A stretch of 64,000 bases of DNA from Neoconidiobolus thromboides FSU 785 (GCA_025603075.1 MU626277.1:3680-67679), one strand, 5' to 3'; positions 1 through 32,742 are shown, numbered from the stretch's first letter. Program-made: numbers and translations. Notes: a model not told the origin generated them from the letters alone.

Positions 1-165
1 AATGTATTAGGTGAAAATGGTGTAGCTGATGTTAAAGCTAAAGCTAAAGTTGATGGGATTGCTGATGAAAAAGTCAATGCTAGTGTATTAGGCAAAGATG
101 GTAACTTGCTACAGGTCGACTTAAAGAAAGTAATTTCGTTAGGTGATAGGAATAAGGAATATTAA
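1..165 (+). CDS. 3' end of a 27-aa beta-repeat protein (paralogue P0, truncated by window edge)
   Basis: Frame 1 reads NVLGENGVADVKAKAKVDGIADEKVNASVLGKDGNLLQVDLKKVISLGDRNKEY*, the same repeat and C-terminal cap as the ORF at 731. Confidence 0.88.
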   Translation, partial: NVLGENGVADVKAKAKVDGIADEKVNASVLGKDGNLLQVDLKKVISLGDRNKEY

Positions 166-597
166 GAATTGCGGGTTTCTATTGAATAAATAATTTAAGT
201 TAATTTAATTTAAATAGATTTAAAGTTGGTGGGTCTTTTTAATATTTTCAATAATATTATAACCATAAAAATAATTAAAGCTGGAAAATACAAAATATTA
301 TATCAAAGTTGTAGCATTTAATCTAAAGGCAAGTGTTTTATCATTTTAATCAAAAGTTAGTTTTTTTACTATGATTTTGATAAAGTATATAAAATTAGCT
401 TAAAAAAATAAGTTTATTTTATTTCGTTTTACTTTGCTAATGTATGCTAGTTTTCTAAATTTGGTATATAATTTTATTGTGTAAAATTAATGTAAATTTG
501 AATTGGAAACTAAACCACATAATTAAATTTTTATTAAAAATGAACCTTTTAAATTCATTAGAATTAAATTAAGAAAAATAAAAATAAACAAGACTTA

Positions 598-612
598 AAA
601 AAATAGTATAAA
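598..612 (+). promoter_or_regulatory. Putative TATA-containing motif AAAAAATAGTATAAA upstream of P1
   Basis: About 120 bp upstream of ATG 731. The identical 15-mer lies at 3602-3616, upstream of P2. Confidence 0.4.
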
Positions 613-730
613 TACATGAAAACTTTAACATTTTTGATATCTAACCTATTATTTTATTCGAAATCTAATAACACCTGCTTACCAATTAATAATTTATAAC
701 TAATTAACTAATAATCTATTTACTTTAAAA

Positions 731-1708
731 ATGAAGAATATTTATATAACTTTAGTATTAGTATCTTTTATAGCCAATACAATCTCCCATGAAACTACTA
801 GTAGTAATGAAACTTCAAACTCAGATTCAATAGAATCCAACTTATTAAACATCCCATCTAATGGAAATCAGACGCCAATTTCAAGATCAAGCTATGTCTA
901 TAATACTTATCAACCAGAATATTTAGCTAAAAAACCGGAAGAAATAAAACCTCAAGGTAGACCTGAAGAAAATAAACCTGAAGGGAAAAAGCCTGAGGAA
1001 AGTAAACCACAAGAAAAAAAACCTGAAGAGATCAAACCTCAAGACAATTTCCCAAAAGGCAACCAACCACAAACCAATCAACCAAAACGTAATGAGCCTC
1101 ACGACAATCAGTCCAAAGACTACCAACCTGAGAATGGGGGTTTACCCATTGATATAGGTGCCAATGTCAAGATTGGTAACATTGATTTACTCCGTATCAA
1201 AGTCCTTCTCGATCTTTTAAATAAAGACAAAGGCCTCGCCAACTTAAATGTAAAAGCCAATGTCCTCAATGATTTGGTGAAAGCTGATATTCTTGCCGAT
1301 GTCCTCTCGAAGAAAGGACTTATCAATGCAGATGTCAAAGCTAAAGTAGACGAGCTTGTAAATGCCCAAGTAAATGCTAACGTGTTAAGCGAAAAAGGAG
1401 TAGCTGATGCTAAAGTCAAAGCAAATGTAGCCGATATTGCCAAAGCTGATGTTAAGGCAAATGTGCTAGGTGAAAATGGTGTGGCTAAAGCTGATGTTAA
1501 AGCAGATATAGCTGATGTTGCTAAGGCAGATGTAGGCGCTAACGTCTTAAATAAAGAGGGTATAGCCGATGCTAAGGTTAAAGCGGAAGTAGGAAATGGT
1601 GAGAATAAAGTAGCGGATGTCAATTTGTTGGCTAAAGTATTGAATAATGGGAAATTAGCCCAGATCGATTTGAAAAAATTGAACTTATTGGGTGGAAAGG
1701 GATATTAA
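731..1708 (+). CDS. Secreted 27-aa beta-repeat protein P1 (325 aa)
   Basis: Intronless ORF with signal-peptide-like N-terminus, KPEE/NQP-rich linker, then GGLPIDI cap, about 5 repeats such as VLSEKGVADAKVKANVADIAKADVKAN, and a C-cap. Confidence 0.92.
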   Translation: MKNIYITLVLVSFIANTISHETTSSNETSNSDSIESNLLNIPSNGNQTPISRSSYVYNTYQPEYLAKKPEEIKPQGRPEENKPEGKKPEESKPQEKKPEEIKPQDNFPKGNQPQTNQPKRNEPHDNQSKDYQPENGGLPIDIGANVKIGNIDLLRIKVLLDLLNKDKGLANLNVKANVLNDLVKADILADVLSKKGLINADVKAKVDELVNAQVNANVLSEKGVADAKVKANVADIAKADVKANVLGENGVAKADVKADIADVAKADVGANVLNKEGIADAKVKAEVGNGENKVADVNLLAKVLNNGKLAQIDLKKLNLLGGKGY

Positions 1709-2475
1709 TGATTAAGGGTTTTATATTAAATAAATAATTATATATTTTGAATTTTATGGTTACAATTACTTTGTTTTGTCAAATTTAGTATTGATGCATT
1801 GATTCGTCCAGAATAATCAAAAATGAGAACATAGCGTTTATTGAGAATTATGTTATTGATTAAACATATCTCATTAGTCTTTTAAAAATTGAGTTTTCGT
1901 ACTACAGTTTTATAAAAAAATACAAAAATCTGACTAAAAGAATTTGAGCTTACTTAGTCTTCATAGGAATTAATAGCACGTATTGTAAAATAATTTTTTT
2001 GATACTTTATTTAGCATATCGAATACACTTTAAAATAATAATATCGTAAGCACTGCTTCAAAAAGTTTTGATTAAAAAAACTATAAAACATAAGATGAAT
2101 TATTTTAATTGAATTGTAATACTTTTAAAGTTATTTTATATTGCACTCTTGTATCTAAAATAAAATTACTACGAGGAGTATTAGTTCTATAATAAAAGGT
2201 TACATACATTTAGAAAGTTTCTTCTCATTCCTTTATTTTGTTTATTTTTATGTAAGATAAAATTATGAAAATCTAACTAATATTCAAAAAAAAACACTTG
2301 TCTTTTATCATATAAAAAGAAAGCTTCCATAGTTCTCAGACTATAGTAACGGCATATAAATAGATCCTGATATTATTGATATGATATTTACTCTATGATC
2401 TATTTTTAAAGATAAGTAATTGAAAGCTATTCCGCTCTCTTTAAGGGCAATTTATTACAATTTTATTATACATAT

Positions 2476-2566
2476 AACTGGGCATTTACAATTTTTTATT
2501 TACCAAGTTCAATCATGATGTTTTTCTACTTTTGCATGTGTAAATACAAAATGAAAATGCCCAGTT
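2476..2566. mobile_element. Second MITE-like element (TIR AACTGGGCATTT / AAATGCCCAGTT)
   Basis: Perfect 12-bp inverted termini flanked by ATAT on both sides (2472-2475, 2567-2570). Only one copy seen. Confidence 0.5.
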
Positions 2567-2570
2567 ATAT

Positions 2571-2668
2571 GAGGCTGTTTTTTTTTGTTTCATTACTTTT
2601 TCCATTTTTCAAGAGCTATTTGAGTAGAAAGATTATTAGTAAAATTCTTAAACAAAAAATACATCCTC
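2571..2668 (+). mobile_element. ~98-bp MITE, family A
   Basis: GAGGCTGTTTTT...TTCATTACTTTTTCCATTTTT...CTATTTGAGT...TTAGTAAAATTCTTAA...AAAAATACATCCTC, flanked by ATAT/GTAT. Confidence 0.8.
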
Positions 2669-3601
2669 GTATGTTTAATATAATTTGGTAGTAATGTTAT
2701 TAATTTTCAAATAAATTAAAATATGGCTTGGTAACTGATGTAATGGTTAATAAAATGAATTTATAGTGAAATATAATTCTAGACTCATTATTAGCATAGA
2801 ATTTATATTGATAAAGCGTTACGTATTTAAAAATAAATATATCCTATTTCCTTTCAATAATGATAAAGTGGATTAGTAATTTTTTAATTTAATTTAGCTT
2901 AGTAACCAAATTATAGCAAGTTTAGTTCTAGACTTGAAAATTATGGCCAATATTTATGCTGATAAAATTAAATAAATTAAAGTCAACTCTAAGAGAAAAT
3001 TTCGAGCTCAACTAACTATTACATAAACAGAAAGAATCAGGCTATAGTCAAGTTGTCTTAATATCATTGTTTAAGTTTTCAACTGTTACTTTATAGTAAA
3101 TATTGTAAATATTGTAAACAATTGTATGGTTAACAATGTTCTTTAGAGAATATTGATGATTTGATAAATGGGTAACCAGGTGGCAATTAATCTAAGAGGA
3201 CCTAAGTGCTACTCAATTCATTTAATTGTTACAAATAGTTCAACCTTTAAAATAACTAACTATCAGGATAACAAAGTTTAGTTTCTTATAAAAATTTAAT
3301 ATAAAAAATGTAGCAACTTCAAAGCCTTGAATTAAATCCTAATTTAATAGTTCTAAAACAATTAAAGTTTTCATTTTTTTAGTGGTTGATTTGTGGTTTT
3401 AATTGAATTTTTAATCAATATTTGTATTTTAATTATTTAATTACAATATTGATAACTATTAAGTGAAGCTTGTAACTTTATAATGAAAGTTCTATAGACG
3501 ATGGTAAAAAAAACTATAAGGAGGCTTAAAAGAGTAAAAAAAGCGGAATACTAGGGTTTAATATTCATTAAAACACTATAATAATATACTTAATAAGGAT
3601 T

Positions 3602-3616
3602 AAAAAATAGTATAAA
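3602..3616 (+). promoter_or_regulatory. Putative TATA-containing motif upstream of P2
   Basis: Identical to 598-612, about 100 bp upstream of ATG 3714. Confidence 0.4.
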
Positions 3617-3713
3617 AAGCTAATTTTAAGCTACAGTGAAAAAACAAAAAAACAAACTTTTATATCTAAAATAATAACCTATAGCTTTATACCTTATCTA
3701 ATATTGAAAAGAA

Positions 3714-4634
3714 ATGAAAAATTTTATCCTAATTAATGTTTTATTAAGTTTACTTACTGGCAGCACTTCTCAGCCTATGGGCATTAATTCTTACCAGCCA
3801 TGTAAACCTTATAGTGATTGTAGTGATAGACGTCCTATGAAAGAAGCTAATAATAATATACAAATCAACAATGTTCAAGATTTGGGTAATGTTATTGAAC
3901 AAATTGGTGAATCTTTAAAGCACCAGCAAAATCAACAATTTCAACAACAATATCAAAATCAACAGCAACAGCAGATGTTGACTCAACAACAAATTCAACA
4001 AATTAGACAGCAGGAAAAACAGCAAATGAATCCCAGTAAGTTCCCACCAACGGGCAAGTTGCCACCCATTGGTGGTTTACCTATTGACATTGATGCCCAT
4101 GCCAAATTAGGTGATATCGATTTATTAAACCTTAATGTGGTTTTAAACTTGCTCAGCAAAAAAGGGTTATTAGATGGTCGAGTAAAAGCAGATGTGTTAA
4201 ATAAATTTATTGGAGCGGACGCATTAGCTGGTGTGTTAACTAACAAAGGATTAGTTGATGCTGATGTTAAAGCTAAAGTTCGAGAACTTGTTAATGCACA
4301 AGTTAAAGCTAATATATTGAGTGATAAAGGAGTGGCAGATGCTAGAGTCAAAGCGGATGTTAAAGGAGTAGCTAACGCAGACGTTAAAGCTAATGTTTTG
4401 GGTCAAAAAGGATTGGCCGATGCTGATGTTAAAGCTAAAGTAATGGATTTGGCAGATGCTAATGTACATGCTAATGTACTAGATAAAAATGGGTTGGCTG
4501 ATGTTGAAGTTAAAGCTAAAGTTGGGCCAGATGGTAATATCGTTGATGCTAATTTGGATGCTAAAGTGCTTAAGGATGGGCAATTAGCTAAAGTGGGTTT
4601 AACAAAAGCAGATATTTTAAAGAGTAGTAAATAA
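3714..4634 (+). CDS. Secreted 27-aa beta-repeat protein P2 (306 aa)
   Basis: Signal-peptide-like start, Q-rich linker, GGLPIDI cap, and repeats collinear unit-for-unit with P1. Confidence 0.92.
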   Translation: MKNFILINVLLSLLTGSTSQPMGINSYQPCKPYSDCSDRRPMKEANNNIQINNVQDLGNVIEQIGESLKHQQNQQFQQQYQNQQQQQMLTQQQIQQIRQQEKQQMNPSKFPPTGKLPPIGGLPIDIDAHAKLGDIDLLNLNVVLNLLSKKGLLDGRVKADVLNKFIGADALAGVLTNKGLVDADVKAKVRELVNAQVKANILSDKGVADARVKADVKGVANADVKANVLGQKGLADADVKAKVMDLADANVHANVLDKNGLADVEVKAKVGPDGNIVDANLDAKVLKDGQLAKVGLTKADILKSSK

Positions 4635-4815
4635 CCATTTTCATTTATTTGTTTATTTCTTATTAAATGTTAAGGATGATGAAATAAAATATTTTAAATA
4701 AATATAGTTTCTAAAATTTGTTAAACTTTTAATTGAACCATTATTATTAAAATATTAAGGAATACAAAGATGCTAGTAAATTTAAATATTGATTAATTAA
4801 TTTTATTGTGAAACC

Positions 4816-7178
4816 TTAATATTTGTATCCATAATGTGTGCTTACAATGCTCATAATCGAAGCTTTCACTTGAGCATCAACTAAACCATCAACACCAAGG
4901 ATATTAGTATCAACCATGAGTTTGGCCATTTCAGCAATTGAAGCTCTCAATTTGAAATCAACTAATCCATTTGGTCCTAGAGCGTTGAGTTTTGCATTTA
5001 TATCAGCGATTCCATCAACACAAGCTTTTAATTTAAGATCAACTAGCCCATTACTTCNNNNNNNNNNNNNNNNNNNNNNNNNNNNNNNNNNNNNNNNNNN
5101 NNNNNNNNNNNNNNNNNNNNNNNNNNNNNNNNNNNNNNNNNNNNNNNNNNNNNNNNNNNNNNNNNNNNNNNNNNNNNNNNNNNNNNNNNNNNNNNNNNNN
5201 NNNNNNNNNNNNNNNNNNNNNNNNNNNNNNNNNNNNNNNNNNNNNNNNNNNNNNNNNNNNNNNNNNNNNNNNNNNNNNNNNNNNNNNNNNNNNNNNNNNN
5301 NNNNNNNNNNNNNNNNNNNNNNNNNNNNNNNNNNNNNNNNNNNNNNNNNNNNNNNNNNNNNNNNNNNNNNNNNNNNNNNNNNNNNNNNNNNNNNNNNNNN
5401 NNNNNNNNNNNNNNNNNNNNNNNNNNNNNNNNNNNNNNNNNNNNNNNNNNNNNNNNNNNNNNNNNNNNNNNNNNNNNNNNNNNNNNNNNNNNNNNNNNNN
5501 NNNNNNNNNNNNNNNNNNNNNNNNNNNNNNNNNNNNNNNNNNNNNNNNNNNNNNNNNNNNNNNNNNNNNNNNNNNNNNNNNNNNNNNNNNNNNNNNNNNN
5601 NNNNNNNNNNNNNNNNNNNNNNNNNNNNNNNNNNNNNNNNNNNNNNNNNNNNNNNNNNNNNNNNNNNNNNNNNNNNNNNNNNNNNNNNNNNNNNNNNNNN
5701 NNNNNNNNNNNNNNNNNNNNNNNNNNNNNNNNNNNNNNNNNNNNNNNNNNNNNNNNNNNNNNNNNNNNNNNNNNNNNNNNNNNNNNNNNNNNNNNNNNNN
5801 NNNNNNNNNNNNNNNNNNNNNNNNNNNNNNNNNNNNNNNNNNNNNNNNNNNNNNNNNCTTTTAATTTAAGATCAACTAGCCCATTACTTCCCATGACGTT
5901 AATTTGAGATGCTAATTTAACTATTTCACCAATAGAAGCTTTTAAGTCAGCAGTAGCTAAACCTTTATCACTAAGAATATTAGCCTTGATAATGAGGTCA
6001 GCCATCCCATTGATTGAGGCTTTAGCTTTAACATCCACTACACCGTTCTTGCCTAAAACACTTGCATCAATATCAAGTTTGGCAAGTTTTTCAATAGAAG
6101 CCTTCAGCTTGGCTTCAGCTAACCCATTAACACCTAATACTTTTGATTCAAGGATTAAGGAAGAGATATCTTTAATTGATGCCATTAATTTTAAACTAGC
6201 GACACCGTCATTGCCCAAAAGTTTAGCTTCAGCCGAAATCTTAGTAATTTTATCAACGCATGCTTTTAAGTTAGCATCTACAAGGCCATTCTTGTTTAAA
6301 ATATTAATCTGAGCTGATAAATCAGCAATGTCTCCGATACATACTTTAAGCTTTGAGTTCACTAAACCATCTTTACCCAAAACATCCAATTGAGCAACAA
6401 TTTTGGCAATATCACCAATAGAAGCTTGTACCTTTGCGTTGACCAAACCTTTATTACTGAGAATGCTAGCATCAATACCAAGGTCGATAATTTTTTTCTT
6501 ATCACCAACCTTAGCATCAATTGAAGTATCTAACAAACCTTTTTTGCCTAATAAACTAGCTTGAAAATCGGTGTCAACTTTTTTATCAAAAAGGTCAACC
6601 CCGCCTTTAACATCAACAAGCCCGTTTTTGCCAAATAATTTTAAATTTAAATCACTATCAACTAATTTATGACCAAACAAATTTAAATCAAAGCCCAAAT
6701 TGATAGGGATGCCATTTTTCTCTTTCTTATTACTATCAGCATTGCTATATTTAGGGTCTTCTTTCTTCTTAGTATCCTTATTATATTTAGAGTCTTCTTT
6801 CTTTTTTTTGTCATTATTGTATTTTTCTTCTTTCTTCTTTTTGTCATTATTGTATTCTTCTTCTTTCCCATATGTTCTACGGTAAATAGGTCCACTCTCG
6901 GAATAGCTAGCCACCATTGAAGATAAATTAGAACCTAATTGCTCTAAACCAATACTGTTGGTATCATTTACCCTTAACTCAGAAACTAAGTCCTGCTCTT
7001 GCTTTGTAGTTTCATGACAGGCACTCTCCCAGTAGTATTGTTCCGGACAAGGTTGGCAGGCGCCGTTATGATTATACAAACAATCGGTATTGGCTCCCAG
7101 AACCTTTTCGCTTTGGCATACACTGGAGAATACAGCTAAGAAGGCCAAGCTTACGTAGATATTAGAGTTATTAGGCAT
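4816..7178 (-). CDS. Secreted 27-aa beta-repeat protein P3 (at least 12 repeats; spans assembly gap)
   Basis: Signal-like start, small Cys module, YNNDKKKK linker, GIPINL cap, then repeats. Below the gap the repeats continue (…ACVDGIADINAKLNALGPNGLVDFKLRAS…HYGYKY*) to TAA at 4816-4818. Confidence 0.88.
5058..5857. other. Assembly gap (800 N)
   Basis: Run of N. The same 33 bp occur on both sides (5025-5057 and 5858-5890). Confidence 0.99.
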
Positions 7179-8415
7179 ATTAGTTATATGTTATTAAGGA
7201 GTATTTGGTTTTTTTGATATTCTTAATTGGTGAAATTAGAGGAGTTTATATACCTTTTCAAAACGATGCTAGATTATAAATAGATTCATTGTATCTTCTT
7301 TCAATCATTTGAATTTAAAACAAGTGGGTTTCTTACTTCAAAATAGTAGTTCCAAGAATTGGGGATAGTTTATTTTTATCACTACAATACATTCTACAAT
7401 ATCTATTATAGACTTTTAATTGAATACTAATAATGCTAGTTGAGGTTGAAAGTTTTAAATAGTTTCTATATTTGGAAATAGTCTAATAGCTTCATTATTT
7501 TACCAGGATAAAATTTTGTAAGATTTGATTTAGGCTTTAATCCTGTGAATAAAGTTACCGCTGATTAATTAAAGTATAGATATAATACAAATTATACAAA
7601 TAAATGCTATTATTAGGTTGTTTTTTATATGGTGATAGTTTTTCGTGCGCATAAAGAGTATTGAGTTACTGGTCGTAGCAGTAAATATTCTTTATTTCTA
7701 AAAATAATGCTTATTTCAATACTGATTTTTTTAGTAGCTGTAGCTGTATATTAAAAACCCTTTCTACTCACATGAAAACTACAAACATACGAAAACCTAT
7801 GTAATAAACAATAAATCAAGGTTTATTATTGTTTTTAAAATAGTAAGTTTGTACGAAAAAATATTTACATCTTTTTGTTTATATTAGATATTCTTGCTTT
7901 TTCCCCTCTCTTTTAATTATTTTAGTCTTAATATTATTATTGAATACAATTATTAATAAAATTTAAGTGGATATACATTACATATAAAATTGTTTATCAT
8001 AGTATTTGTACATTGAAACTCAGATAAAAAATCCCAGCTAAATAAATATGGAGAAAAGTTTATCCTATGATCATTATCATCGTTTCAGAGACTCATCAAT
8101 TAGATTAGTTTATTAATAAAACTCTTATGAGTTCTAGTACTCTATTAAAATATTTGATTGAAGTCAAAGACAAAATCATCCCAGTTTGATTAAAATTTAA
8201 TTTGCAAATACAAGAATGTCTTTTTTTGTTTTATTGTTGTTCATCTTTTAACTAGCATTAAATTTAGAAAAATCATGTTTGATAATGTATCAAAGGGATA
8301 TTTTATTTTACTTTATTTTAAAAAACATTAATAATTATAATATTTGTTCTTAACATTTTTAATAATAAATCAATACCGGAAAAAAGTTAACCCTTGGGTT
8401 TAAATTAATTCATAT

Positions 8416-30348: not shown

Positions 30349-32742
30349 ATGAAGAGCTATCATTTAATTTCTTGTTTTACATTGTTTCTCTATAGCGTAA
30401 CTAGTCAAAATGTCACTACTACCAAAAACTTACAAAAGAAACAAATCACCATTGATAACTTTTTAAAATCTACTTTTTCCAAACAATCTTTCAACTACAA
30501 TTGGGTAACTCATGAGAGTGAACGTGATGGCTATTATGTTGAAGAAGAAGACAATAAAATCATTTTAAAATCCATCGATCTTACTGGTAATAAACAAGTT
30601 AAAGTATTAATTGATACCACTAAATTTATTGATGAAAATAAGCAACCTATAATTTATGATGATTATTCCCTTTCTCCTGATTTACAATATATTGCATTAA
30701 CAGTGAACTCTACTAAATTATGGTCTAAGTCCAGTTTTGCATCTTATTATATCTTTGATTTACAAGATCCTAATCGACTAGGTAGATTGATCAATCGTCA
30801 TTATCGTAACTGGGGACAATATAATAAACAAGATAATATATTACAAACCTTAGTATGGTCACCAAAAGGACATAATTTAGCATTTGTTCAAGATAATAAT
30901 ATTTATGCAATTATTGAGTCTTTTACTAGTTTAATTCAAGTCACTAAAGATGGAAAGGATACTTTACAGAATGGAATTCCTGATTGGGTTTATGAAGAAG
31001 AAATATGGCCTAATAAAGAAGCTATTGTTTGGGATCAAAGTGGTACAACGTTAGCTTATTTAACTTTCGATAGTTCCAATGTTCAGGTCCAAAGTTTAGA
31101 AACATTTACTACTAGAAAAAATAATGCTCAATTTTCATTAACTTCTAAACCGTATTCAAGTGTTTATGAACAACGTTATCCAAAACCAGGCTTTAATATT
31201 ACTCAAGTTAAAATTAATGTTGCTGAATTAACTACTGGAAAAGCCAAAGTACATCAAATCAATTATAATTCAGTTAATGAAATTGATCCTGTGGTTACTG
31301 ATTTGCAATTTTCAAAATCTTCTTATAATGATGGGCTTATTATTCGATTTACTAATAGATTTCAAGATAGAGTGTATACTAGTGTAGCAACTAATCGTAA
31401 TTATTCCAATCCAACTATTGTACGTCAAGAAAAAGCAGGTCAAGATATAAATAATCCAAGCTTAGATGATAAAGGATGGTATGAAAATAGACCTCTTTAT
31501 TTATTACCAAAATTACATGAATTCGGTATTAACGAATCCGCTTATATTGATTTTGTTATTGTGGATGGTTTTACTCATCTTGCTTTATTCTCTCCAATTA
31601 CTGCTTCCAAGCCAAAAAGAATATTAACTAAAGGTGATTTTGATGTCGTTTCTATCAATGGTTTAGATGTCAAATCTGGTACTATTTATTATTCAAGTGC
31701 TGAAACAGATTCTACTGTGGAAGATATTTATTCTATTAAACTTGATGGAAGTAACAAAGTTCATTTAACTAAAGATCAATTTACTGGTGATTCTCAAAAA
31801 TCGGGTACTTATTCAATGTCCTCTTCAGCTTTAGGTGGTTTTGTTGTTATAAATTATAACGGTCCATCTATCCCATGGTCTAGATTAACAAAACAAGGAA
31901 AATTAAATAATTCTCTTTTACTTACTAATAATACCAAACTCGCTACTTTAGTTGAGGAATATAATTATCCCACAACAGTATATTCTAAAGTCAATGTCAA
32001 TGGTAACTCTATCAATGCCTTCGAAATCCGACCATATGATTTTGATCCTTCTAAAAAATATAATGTTGTATTTTATATCTATGGTGGGCCAAACAGTCAA
32101 CAAGTCACACGTAGTTTTAATTTTAATTTACAACGTTGGTTGGTGGGTAGTCGTAATGATACCATTGTAGTAACAGTAGATGGACGAGGTACTGGTCGTA
32201 AAGGTAGAAAATTTATGGTCTCAGTACGTGAACATTTAGGTGAATATGAAGCTGATGATGTGATTTCAGCTGGTCAACAATGGGCTAAATTACCTTATGT
32301 TAATCCATCAAAAATAGGTGTTTGGGGTAAATCGTATGGTGGATATATGACTTTACGTACACTTGAACTTCAACCTAAGGATCTTGTCTTTAGTTTTGGT
32401 GCTTCTTTCTCACCAGTATCTGATTGGAAGTTTTATGATTCTTTATATACAGAAAGATATATGTTTACTCCACAAGTGAATGCTAAAGGATACAACAAAT
32501 CTGCTATCAATAATTTTGAAAACTTTAAGAAGACAGAATTATTTTTGACTCATGGTACAAGAGATGATAATGTTCATCAGTCTAATTCTATGTATATTAT
32601 TAATAATTTTGCTGCTAATTATATTATCTCTTATGATTTTACTCCTGTTATTGATGATAATCATTACTATGAATCAAAGTCAAATAAGCGCTCCCTCTAT
32701 CTTAAGTTGGAAAGGTTCTTTAGTCGTGTTTTTAAAGCTTAA
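30349..32742 (+). CDS. Secreted dipeptidyl peptidase IV (S9B), intronless
   Basis: Signal peptide, DWVYEEE, YPKPG, YGGPNSQ, VDGRGTG, nucleophile WGKSYGG, GTRDDNVH and DDNH triad. Confidence 0.93.
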   Translation: MKSYHLISCFTLFLYSVTSQNVTTTKNLQKKQITIDNFLKSTFSKQSFNYNWVTHESERDGYYVEEEDNKIILKSIDLTGNKQVKVLIDTTKFIDENKQPIIYDDYSLSPDLQYIALTVNSTKLWSKSSFASYYIFDLQDPNRLGRLINRHYRNWGQYNKQDNILQTLVWSPKGHNLAFVQDNNIYAIIESFTSLIQVTKDGKDTLQNGIPDWVYEEEIWPNKEAIVWDQSGTTLAYLTFDSSNVQVQSLETFTTRKNNAQFSLTSKPYSSVYEQRYPKPGFNITQVKINVAELTTGKAKVHQINYNSVNEIDPVVTDLQFSKSSYNDGLIIRFTNRFQDRVYTSVATNRNYSNPTIVRQEKAGQDINNPSLDDKGWYENRPLYLLPKLHEFGINESAYIDFVIVDGFTHLALFSPITASKPKRILTKGDFDVVSINGLDVKSGTIYYSSAETDSTVEDIYSIKLDGSNKVHLTKDQFTGDSQKSGTYSMSSSALGGFVVINYNGPSIPWSRLTKQGKLNNSLLLTNNTKLATLVEEYNYPTTVYSKVNVNGNSINAFEIRPYDFDPSKKYNVVFYIYGGPNSQQVTRSFNFNLQRWLVGSRNDTIVVTVDGRGTGRKGRKFMVSVREHLGEYEADDVISAGQQWAKLPYVNPSKIGVWGKSYGGYMTLRTLELQPKDLVFSFGASFSPVSDWKFYDSLYTERYMFTPQVNAKGYNKSAINNFENFKKTELFLTHGTRDDNVHQSNSMYIINNFAANYIISYDFTPVIDDNHYYESKSNKRSLYLKLERFFSRVFKA

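Follow-up and report, generated by a model that had tools for sequence, protein, structure and literature searches.

A tandem gene cluster in Neoconidiobolus thromboides encodes apparently exported proteins built on a 27-residue repeat with beta-strand periodicity

The DNA stretch analysed here comprises 64,000 nucleotides of the genome of Neoconidiobolus thromboides FSU 785 (GCA_025603075.1 MU626277.1:3680-67679), and is referred to below as the window. At its left end, at least four paralogous genes of old origin (P0, P1, P2 and P3), apparently without introns, form a tandem cluster, and their products are built on a common unit of 27 amino acids. All four open reading frames (ORFs) lie within the first 7.2 kb, and no additional copy of the family was found in the remaining 57 kb (7200-64000). 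The window is AT-rich: intergenic parts have a G+C content of about 23%, compared with 36-40% within P0-P3. Only the end of P0 is included (1..165, + strand), its translation giving the C-terminal 54 codons (1-162) and a stop codon; the gene continues beyond the left end of the window. In this fragment, which is 48-51% identical to the units of P1, P2 and P3, a full unit precedes a degenerate last one and the tail ...RNKEY. P1 (731..1708, + strand) encodes 325 amino acids, with a repeat domain of approximately six units at 1139-1705 and the C-terminus ...GGKGY. P2 (3714..4634, + strand) encodes 306 amino acids and has a repeat domain, also of about six units, at 4074-4631.

P3 lies on the opposite strand and is interrupted by an assembly gap of 800 N (5058..5857). 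Its 5′ part (5858..7178, - strand) starts at 7178 and reads through 440 amino acids up to the N run at 5857; the motif GIPINL, at residue 156, is followed by three degenerate units, and regular units begin at residue 239. The 3′ part (4816..5057, - strand) corresponds to the last 2.5 units, the tail ...STHYGYKY and a stop codon at 4818-4816. Past the gap, the repeat array resumes at 5055 in another frame of the scaffold numbering. An ORF of 711 amino acids spanning 5043-7178 is an artefact, as it reads through the N run; the real 3′ end of P3 is the stop codon at 4818-4816. The genes and strands proposed in the initial annotation of this DNA (P0 as a tail only, P1 and P2 on the + strand and P3 on the - strand) are thus confirmed, with a corrected gene model for P3.

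Identical stretches of 33 bases (5025-5057 and 5858-5890) flank the gap. Three DNA runs (X2-X4) and one RNA run (X5) from public data were compared with positions 1190-7189; X4 and X5 come from diverged strains. Merging the identical 33 bases keeps both the reading frame and the repeat register, and a joint from 5024 to 5858 with these 33 shared letters is present in contigs from each of the four runs, DNA and RNA alike. By direct joining, P3 would have 509 residues and 13 units. The 247-nt contig that includes the junction is, however, found at about twice the depth of its neighbours (74.5 versus 34 in X2; 104.5 versus 41 in X3), its depth in the RNA run being 73, versus 27-37 for its neighbours, and a joint leading back from 5959 to 4855 is present in all three DNA runs. 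Both the doubled depth and the back-joint led us to reject a simple false gap. In the RNA run, the junction contig has a loose end that extends 120 letters past 4855. Thirty of these letters continue in frame after ...VKASI and read E-N-I-V-K-V-A-G-D-L, which fits positions 17-26 of a further unit rather than the C-terminal tail. In unit numbering, I67 of the 3′ part falls at position 16 and L407, in the 5′ part, at position 7, so that the shortest link that maintains the register would be of 17 residues, and the duplicated block would comprise 91 + 17 = 108 residues, that is, four units. The gap is therefore probably not 800 unknown bases but a collapsed tandem duplication of about four units, joined by a link of predicted length, and full-length P3 would then probably reach about 617 residues and 17 units.

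The 81-bp/27-amino-acid unit, already described in the initial annotation, proved to be real by four different approaches. Beyond the start motif, all three proteins (P1, P2 and P3) show autocorrelation peaks at lags 27, 54 and 81, and a secondary one at lag 15. A turn motif recurs every 27 residues, four times in P1, four times in P2 and seven times in the sequenced 5′ part of P3. At the DNA level, copies are spaced at 81 nt and sub-spacings alternate between 36 and 45 nt, so the unit is a pair of half-units with a 15+12 substructure. Finally, mean pairwise identity among 15 clean units is 40%, versus 10.4 ± 0.5% for shuffled units. The consensus obtained from these 15 units is VLGxKGLADAKVKASIxDIAKAxVxAN. 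Leu2 and Gly6 are invariant, Ala14 and Lys13 are nearly so (Lys13 is present in 12 of the 15), and Asn occupies position 27 in 10 of the 15. Ala, Lys, Leu, Val, Asp, Asn and Gly abound in the arrays, which have an isoelectric point of about 8.7-8.9 and are almost devoid of Pro, Cys and aromatic residues; these latter amount to 1 in 186-189 residues in P1 and P2 and to 5 in 285 in P3. A start motif of the form G[LI]PI[DN][IL], as had been noted earlier, precedes the array in each protein (GLPIDI at residue 137 of P1 and 121 of P2, in addition to GIPINL in P3).

When the repeat domains of P1 and P2 are compared, protein identity is 60%, the proportion of synonymous differences (pS) is 0.70 and that of non-synonymous differences (pN) is 0.27, with a dN/dS ratio (non-synonymous to synonymous rates) of 0.155. 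As synonymous sites are saturated and dN/dS is low, these sequences identify P1 and P2 as old duplicates under purifying selection. The differences listed for P2 and P3 in the strains sampled by X4 and X5 include 13 synonymous and 16 non-synonymous changes, and no coding indel is listed among them.

In X5, RNA depth reached 40-60 over P3 (about 63 over its 3′ part), compared with 5-9 for P2 and about 2 for P1. In the spacer between P1 and P2, it was 0 over 2790-3589, where the DNA runs show a depth of about 40; the coverage is hence transcript-like and does not correspond to DNA carry-over. P2 and P3 are clearly transcribed, and P1 is weakly covered; a second look-up also showed P1 to be weak in RNA libraries, with a share of 0.16. 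Coverage by RNA contigs is strong for P3, moderate for P2 and weak for P1. RNA contigs over P2 span 3608-4538. Wherever RNA contigs cover the genes they are colinear with the genome and no intron is seen there, in agreement with the genes having been described as intronless.

Upstream of both P1 and P2 there is an identical 15-bp motif, AAAAAATAGTATAAA. The first copy (598..612, + strand) is located 119-133 nt upstream of the P1 ATG, and the second (3602..3616, + strand) 98-112 nt upstream of the P2 ATG. Because the RNA contig over P2 begins at 3608, within the second copy, AAAAAATAGTATAAA may mark the transcription start instead of being a -30 TATA box. Between the two genes, a short element at 2390-2789 shows a word depth of 10^4-10^5 in the three DNA runs, versus about 35 in its flanks. 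It has many joints and loose ends, is also found in the RNA run and holds an inverted repeat (2471-2494 / 2548-2571), and looks like a very high-copy repeat of the type of a miniature inverted-repeat transposable element.

The N-termini of P1, P2 and P3 had been considered to resemble signal peptides, and a heuristic check was positive for all three. A 10-residue hydrophobic core is located within residues 5-16 (residues 6-15 in P1) and is followed by small residues at -3 and -1, with candidate cleavage near residues 19-24. The same heuristic check found in P1-P3 neither a second hydrophobic or membrane segment nor a hydrophobic C-terminal tail of the glycosylphosphatidylinositol-anchor type. 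On these sequence features, P1-P3 are candidates for export by the classical pathway. Between the N-terminus and the start motif, each of the three proteins has the hydrophilic linker that had been noted, of low complexity and different in each paralogue. The P1 linker consists of Lys/Pro/Glu pentapeptides encoded by a 15/30-nt tandem repeat (961-1048), that of P2 is poly-Gln, and that of P3 is rich in Tyr, Asn, Asp and Lys and is encoded by 33-36-nt tandem repeats (6746-6867). Since the P1 and P3 linkers are themselves made of short tandem DNA repeats, their sequences indicate an evolution through repeat expansion of their own that does not depend on the 81-nt units. There is a single dibasic site in each linker. 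P3 has, in addition, a module of four Cys (C33, C41, C44 and C54) ahead of the linker, and three of its units carry a Cys at position 15. In P2 there are two Cys, neither of them in the array; the P1 array has none and that of P3 two or three. Tyr is the final residue of P0, P1 and P3.

With respect to the fold, the hydrophobic moment of the arrays peaks at 170-180 degrees, with z values, relative to shuffled sequences, of 4.3-6.6 over 160-180 degrees and of 6.0-6.6 at 170. At 100 degrees, z is -0.7 to -3.2, at or below the shuffled expectation. The periodicity of the repeat is of the beta-strand type, and an alpha-helical repeat is rejected, as there is nothing at 100 degrees. The description of the unit as a beta-repeat in the initial annotation is thereby borne out, both by the moment and by two AlphaFold models (of the P1 domain and of P3), which are all-beta. 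These results also bear on a possible role of the proteins as protectants of the late embryogenesis abundant (LEA) or hydrophilin type, which would be disordered in solution within an extracellular mucilage and become ordered on drying. The composition of the arrays (dominated by Ala, Lys, Asp, Asn, Gly and Val and nearly free of aromatics, Pro and Cys), the long disordered linkers and the low-to-moderate confidence of the models would suit such a role. We nevertheless consider it very unlikely: the period is 27 and not 11, z is negative at 100 degrees, no LEA Pfam family is matched, and the strict alternation together with the invariant Gly turns suggests a defined beta fold.

The better of the two AlphaFold models is that of P3 residues 237-440, obtained from an alignment that included the paralogues and the bacterial look-alikes described below. 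Its mean predicted local distance difference test score (pLDDT) is 68.6 and its predicted template modelling score 0.57, with 99 residues at a pLDDT of at least 70. It consists of 10-residue strands connected by loops of alternately three and four residues and arranged as an antiparallel meander. Placed on the unit, the strands correspond to positions 7-16 and 20-2, and the turns to positions 17-19 (three residues) and to the G-x-x-G at positions 3-6 (four residues). In the model, one face is apolar (positions 8, 10, 12, 14, 16, 20, 22, 24, 26 and 1, occupied by Ala, Val and Ile) and the other is polar (positions 9, 11, 13, 15, 21, 23, 25 and 27, occupied by Lys, Asp, Asn and Ser); Leu2 and Leu7 are paired next to the Gly turn. 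The unit thus modelled probably forms a two-strand hairpin and the array a two-faced ribbon, the meander being the predicted topology.

A different arrangement of the same strands would be a parallel beta-solenoid, or a curli-like subunit of a functional amyloid, in which each 27-residue unit would form one coil (strand-arc-strand) enclosing Ala and Val, and monomers would stack into fibres. There are two strands per unit and invariant Gly turns, Asn27 (10 of 15 units) is reminiscent of an Asn ladder, and Ala and Val on both strands could make a dry core; language-model features of chaplin, rodlin and ice-binding beta-roll clusters score 0.55-0.62, values to be taken as leads only. Against this arrangement, AlphaFold gave an antiparallel meander, in-register stacking would line up Lys13 (12 of 15 units) into a ladder of equal charges, and neither Curlin_rpt nor chaplin is matched at E <= 10. 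We regard a solenoid as unlikely.

Shape searches with Foldseek (against PDB and AlphaFold database clusters) and in the ESM Atlas gave no significant structural match. When the P3 model was aligned with VIA-align, Z values of 8-11 were obtained with many beta-barrel meanders, porins and outer-membrane barrels being on top; the tool gives Z values of 7-8 as the typical best for models without a clear match. Among the matches of low root-mean-square deviation are single-layer sheets, namely OspA self-assembly mimics (Z 8.7; 2.5 Å over 106 residues) and the G-box of CPAP (Z 9.4). We take these matches to show only that the P3 model is an antiparallel meander.

Two other functions can be considered. 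A membrane-inserting beta-barrel, or a pore directed against host cells, would be in keeping with the VIA-align ranking, in which porins and further outer-membrane barrels come first (Z up to 10.8), and with strands of 10-11 residues of alternating polarity. The face that would contact lipid is made of Ala and Val, with 1 aromatic in 189 residues, no aromatic girdle and a high net charge density; P3 would need more than 26 strands, and the barrel matches are a generic resemblance among meanders. We hold a pore to be highly improbable. A soluble secreted binding protein or effector, the amphipathic sheet of which would not build a material but would hold a lipid, a wax or another ligand of the host or the environment, much as the ApoB beta-belt, lipovitellin or JHBP-type sheets do, is in our opinion quite unlikely. 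There are weak structural matches to the beta-belt of ApoB-100, to lipovitellin and to sheets of the AsmA/LptD type, and a non-significant sequence match to the mite protein Der f 7 (E = 0.39). All these matches are weak and generic, there is no sign of a closed cavity, and an apolar face composed mostly of Ala is a poor lipid-binding surface.

Sequence searches were performed to find relatives of these proteins. At E <= 10, Pfam gave nothing relevant for P1, P2 and both parts of P3, only linker noise being obtained, and sequence searches of the PDB, for which P3 and a profile served as queries, yielded no significant match, Der f 7 included; the initial annotation, which had not recognised a named family in the repeat, agrees with both results. 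Searching 5.8 billion proteins with a word index and P1 as query gave a match to the KPEE linker only. With P2 as query, HMMER was run exhaustively against 1.84 billion representatives and found two matches, both bacterial; a profile search found about 30 proteins from bacteria and none from fungi. Scanning metagenome contigs from JGI gave 185 pattern matches, none of which was confirmed. Feature searches in the ESM Atlas gave scores of at most 0.65 and were uninformative, the chaplin, rodlin and ice-binding beta-roll clusters standing at 0.55-0.62. In the literature on secretomes, hydrophobins and transcriptomes of Conidiobolus and the Entomophthorales, no description of such a family was found.

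The exact P1 and P2 sequences are absent from a collection of 15 billion proteins that does hold the product of a neighbouring gene, a dipeptidyl peptidase IV (DPP-IV)/S9 peptidase (30349-32742; intronless, 797 residues), which matches itself there. The ESM Atlas does hold P1. P1 and P2 may be missing from the annotation deposited for this genome. Excluding itself, the best matches of DPP-IV are proteins of Dispira and Tieghemiomyces (Dimargaritales, Zoopagomycota), at 33-34% identity, in keeping with the early-diverging fungus that had been predicted as the origin of this DNA. The lineage specificity proposed in the initial annotation is only apparent: no fungal relative was found in three large searches, but the databases searched are poor in Entomophthoromycotina and lack P1 and P2. 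This negative speaks only weakly for lineage restriction, as the next matches of DPP-IV reach only 33-34% and the exact P1 and P2 are absent from the 15-billion collection, although the ESM Atlas has P1. The genome of N. thromboides has been described as small and mostly non-repetitive (PMC11105155). As regards sequence, the family of P0-P3 is new, although the general kind to which it belongs, the secreted tandem-repeat proteins of fungi, is familiar.

The sole database matches of the repeat are the approximately 30 bacterial proteins mentioned, of about 200 residues, from Shinella and Aminobacter (Rhizobiales) and from wastewater metagenomes. E values are 2.9e-5 with a single sequence and down to 4e-32 with a profile. 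This bacterial family is uncharacterised and has no Pfam match. In its members, a signal peptide and a GGL-type start are followed by repeats patterned as V-G-G-S-x-G-L-x-D-A-x-V-x-A, by a Gly-rich spacer and by a conserved C-terminus with two Cys. On wastewater metagenome contig L001 (168-827), a gene of the family adjoins a transglutaminase / alpha-E / circularly permuted ATP-grasp set.

A common ancestry of the fungal repeat domain and the Rhizobiales family, for instance by horizontal transfer, would explain why these are the only matches, why P2 is 44% identical to one of the bacterial proteins over 111 residues (four units, including G-L-A-D-A-D-V-K-A), and why the domain starts are alike (GGLxVxVGVSLG in bacteria, GGLPIDIGANVKIG in the fungus). 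An hhalign comparison of the two families gave a probability of 96.3% (E = 2e-9), and a control with shuffled columns about 0.1% (E 0.3-0.8). With the bacterial sequences reversed, however, the probability was still 93.6% (E = 2e-7). Because this reversed control is nearly as high, most of the score comes from a common, near-palindromic periodic pattern, and homology with the bacterial family was not accepted. Moreover, the bacterial unit has 14-15 residues (29 per pair) and is Gly-rich, whereas the fungal one has 27 and is rich in Leu and Lys; and P0-P3 lack the C-terminal two-Cys domain (...IKRC...LCRLL...; about 45 residues) that almost every bacterial member carries. We consider common ancestry distinctly unlikely.

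The mechanism that we propose begins with proteins that would be exported and would consist of a signal peptide, a disordered hydrophilic linker specific to each paralogue, and the array of units. Each unit would contribute two 10-residue beta-strands, so that the array would become a long ribbon of antiparallel hairpins, Ala and Val occupying one face and Lys, Asp, Asn and Ser the other, the first and last units, which are family-specific, probably acting as edge caps. The Ala/Val face would be buried by packing on another ribbon or on some hydrophobic surface. The result would be an extracellular material, structural or surface-active, that could be likened to a cross-beta silk or, on hyphae or conidia, to a coat or adhesive of the hydrophobin type. 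As a lone sheet with an Ala/Val face is unlikely, we consider an extracellular structural or surface-active role (wall or spore coat, adhesive matrix or hydrophobin-like film) to be the most likely one, with a probability of roughly 0.45.

Several points weigh against this proposal. The AlphaFold model of the P1 domain, obtained with paralogue rows only, is a poor all-beta model with a pLDDT of 45; the better model, that of P3, is of moderate confidence only, and the alignment behind it includes bacterial rows of unproven homology. AlphaFold may draw a meander for what is a parallel solenoid, or for a chain that is disordered until assembly. The VIA-align matches are mostly generic barrel meanders, with values near the 7-8 that the tool gives for models without a match. 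In addition, P1 is hardly expressed in the RNA libraries examined.

Cross-beta silks, such as that of the lacewing egg-stalk, are, like the fungal proteins as modelled here, secreted proteins with short strand-turn repeats that form a meander of hairpins, with strands across the long axis, small residues on the packing face and terminal Cys or Tyr that could serve for cross-links. Lacewing silk comes from an insect and has a period of 16, with strands of eight residues rich in Ser, Gly and Ala. The fungal proteins have no sequence similarity to it and a period of 27, and their ribbon is a predicted one. The central sheet of OspA and its mimics, and the G-box of CPAP/SAS-4 (TCP), are likewise long antiparallel meanders with strands of about 10 residues; identity to them is 5-8%, they are not secreted fungal proteins, and both their faces are solvent-exposed and polar, in contrast to the Ala/Val face described here.

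Hydrophobins and the repellents of Ustilago are small, secreted, amphipathic surface coats of filamentous fungi, a role that the initial annotation had proposed for P1-P3 as well. Hydrophobins have eight Cys (C-CC-C-C-CC-C), whereas the arrays described here have 0-3 Cys and match neither PF01185 nor PF06766. Ustilago repellents are cut from a precursor at many KR sites, whereas the proteins described here have one dibasic site in the linker. The extracellular curli CsgA and chaplins resemble P1-P3, as predicted here, in their signal peptide, the low number of imperfect strand-turn-strand repeats, the Gly/Asn turns and the small size of the core residues. Curli units are, however, rich in Gln and Asn and have about 19-23 residues, while those of P1-P3 have 27, are rich in Ala, Val, Lys and Asp, do not match PF07012 and are modelled as antiparallel. 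The chaplin profile (ChpA-C, PF03777) is not matched either, and the likeness to chaplins and rodlins is confined to the language-model features at 0.55-0.62. The turn L-G-x-[KN]-G-L-A-D and the period of 27 differ from the GGxGxDxUx and period of 9 of the RTX beta-roll (PF00353). The same period, and the absence of a Pfam match, separate the unit from LEA group 3 proteins and hydrophilins, with their 11-residue period and helical amphipathicity. Beta-barrels and beta-pore toxins have a large hydrophobic side facing lipid and aromatic girdles, whereas the apolar positions found here are mostly Ala and Val.

The conidia of entomophthoralean fungi are wrapped in an adhesive mucinous fluid, the protein make-up of which is unknown (PMC9026835; PMC8588673). 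This fluid would be a plausible place for proteins of the kind described here. A more specific version of the proposal, which we put forward as tentative and rather unlikely in its full form, is that P1-P3 would constitute a Cys-poor, hydrophobin-independent surface material, in which secreted, amphipathic ribbons of a single beta-layer would self-assemble via the Ala/Val face in the manner of a cross-beta silk and coat or glue hyphae or conidia, with the Rhizobiales design being convergent. Classical hydrophobins are not known in fungi outside the Dikarya.

Whatever their function, P1-P3 represent a protein family without a Pfam model, of which the exact P1 and P2 sequences are absent even from a 15-billion-protein collection. 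If folded as modelled, the repeat would be a natural case of the ionic strand design with one apolar face that is used in self-assembling peptide materials. The water-repellency and stickiness of aerial structures and spores are poorly understood in non-Dikarya fungi, and this family would be a concrete candidate to account for them.

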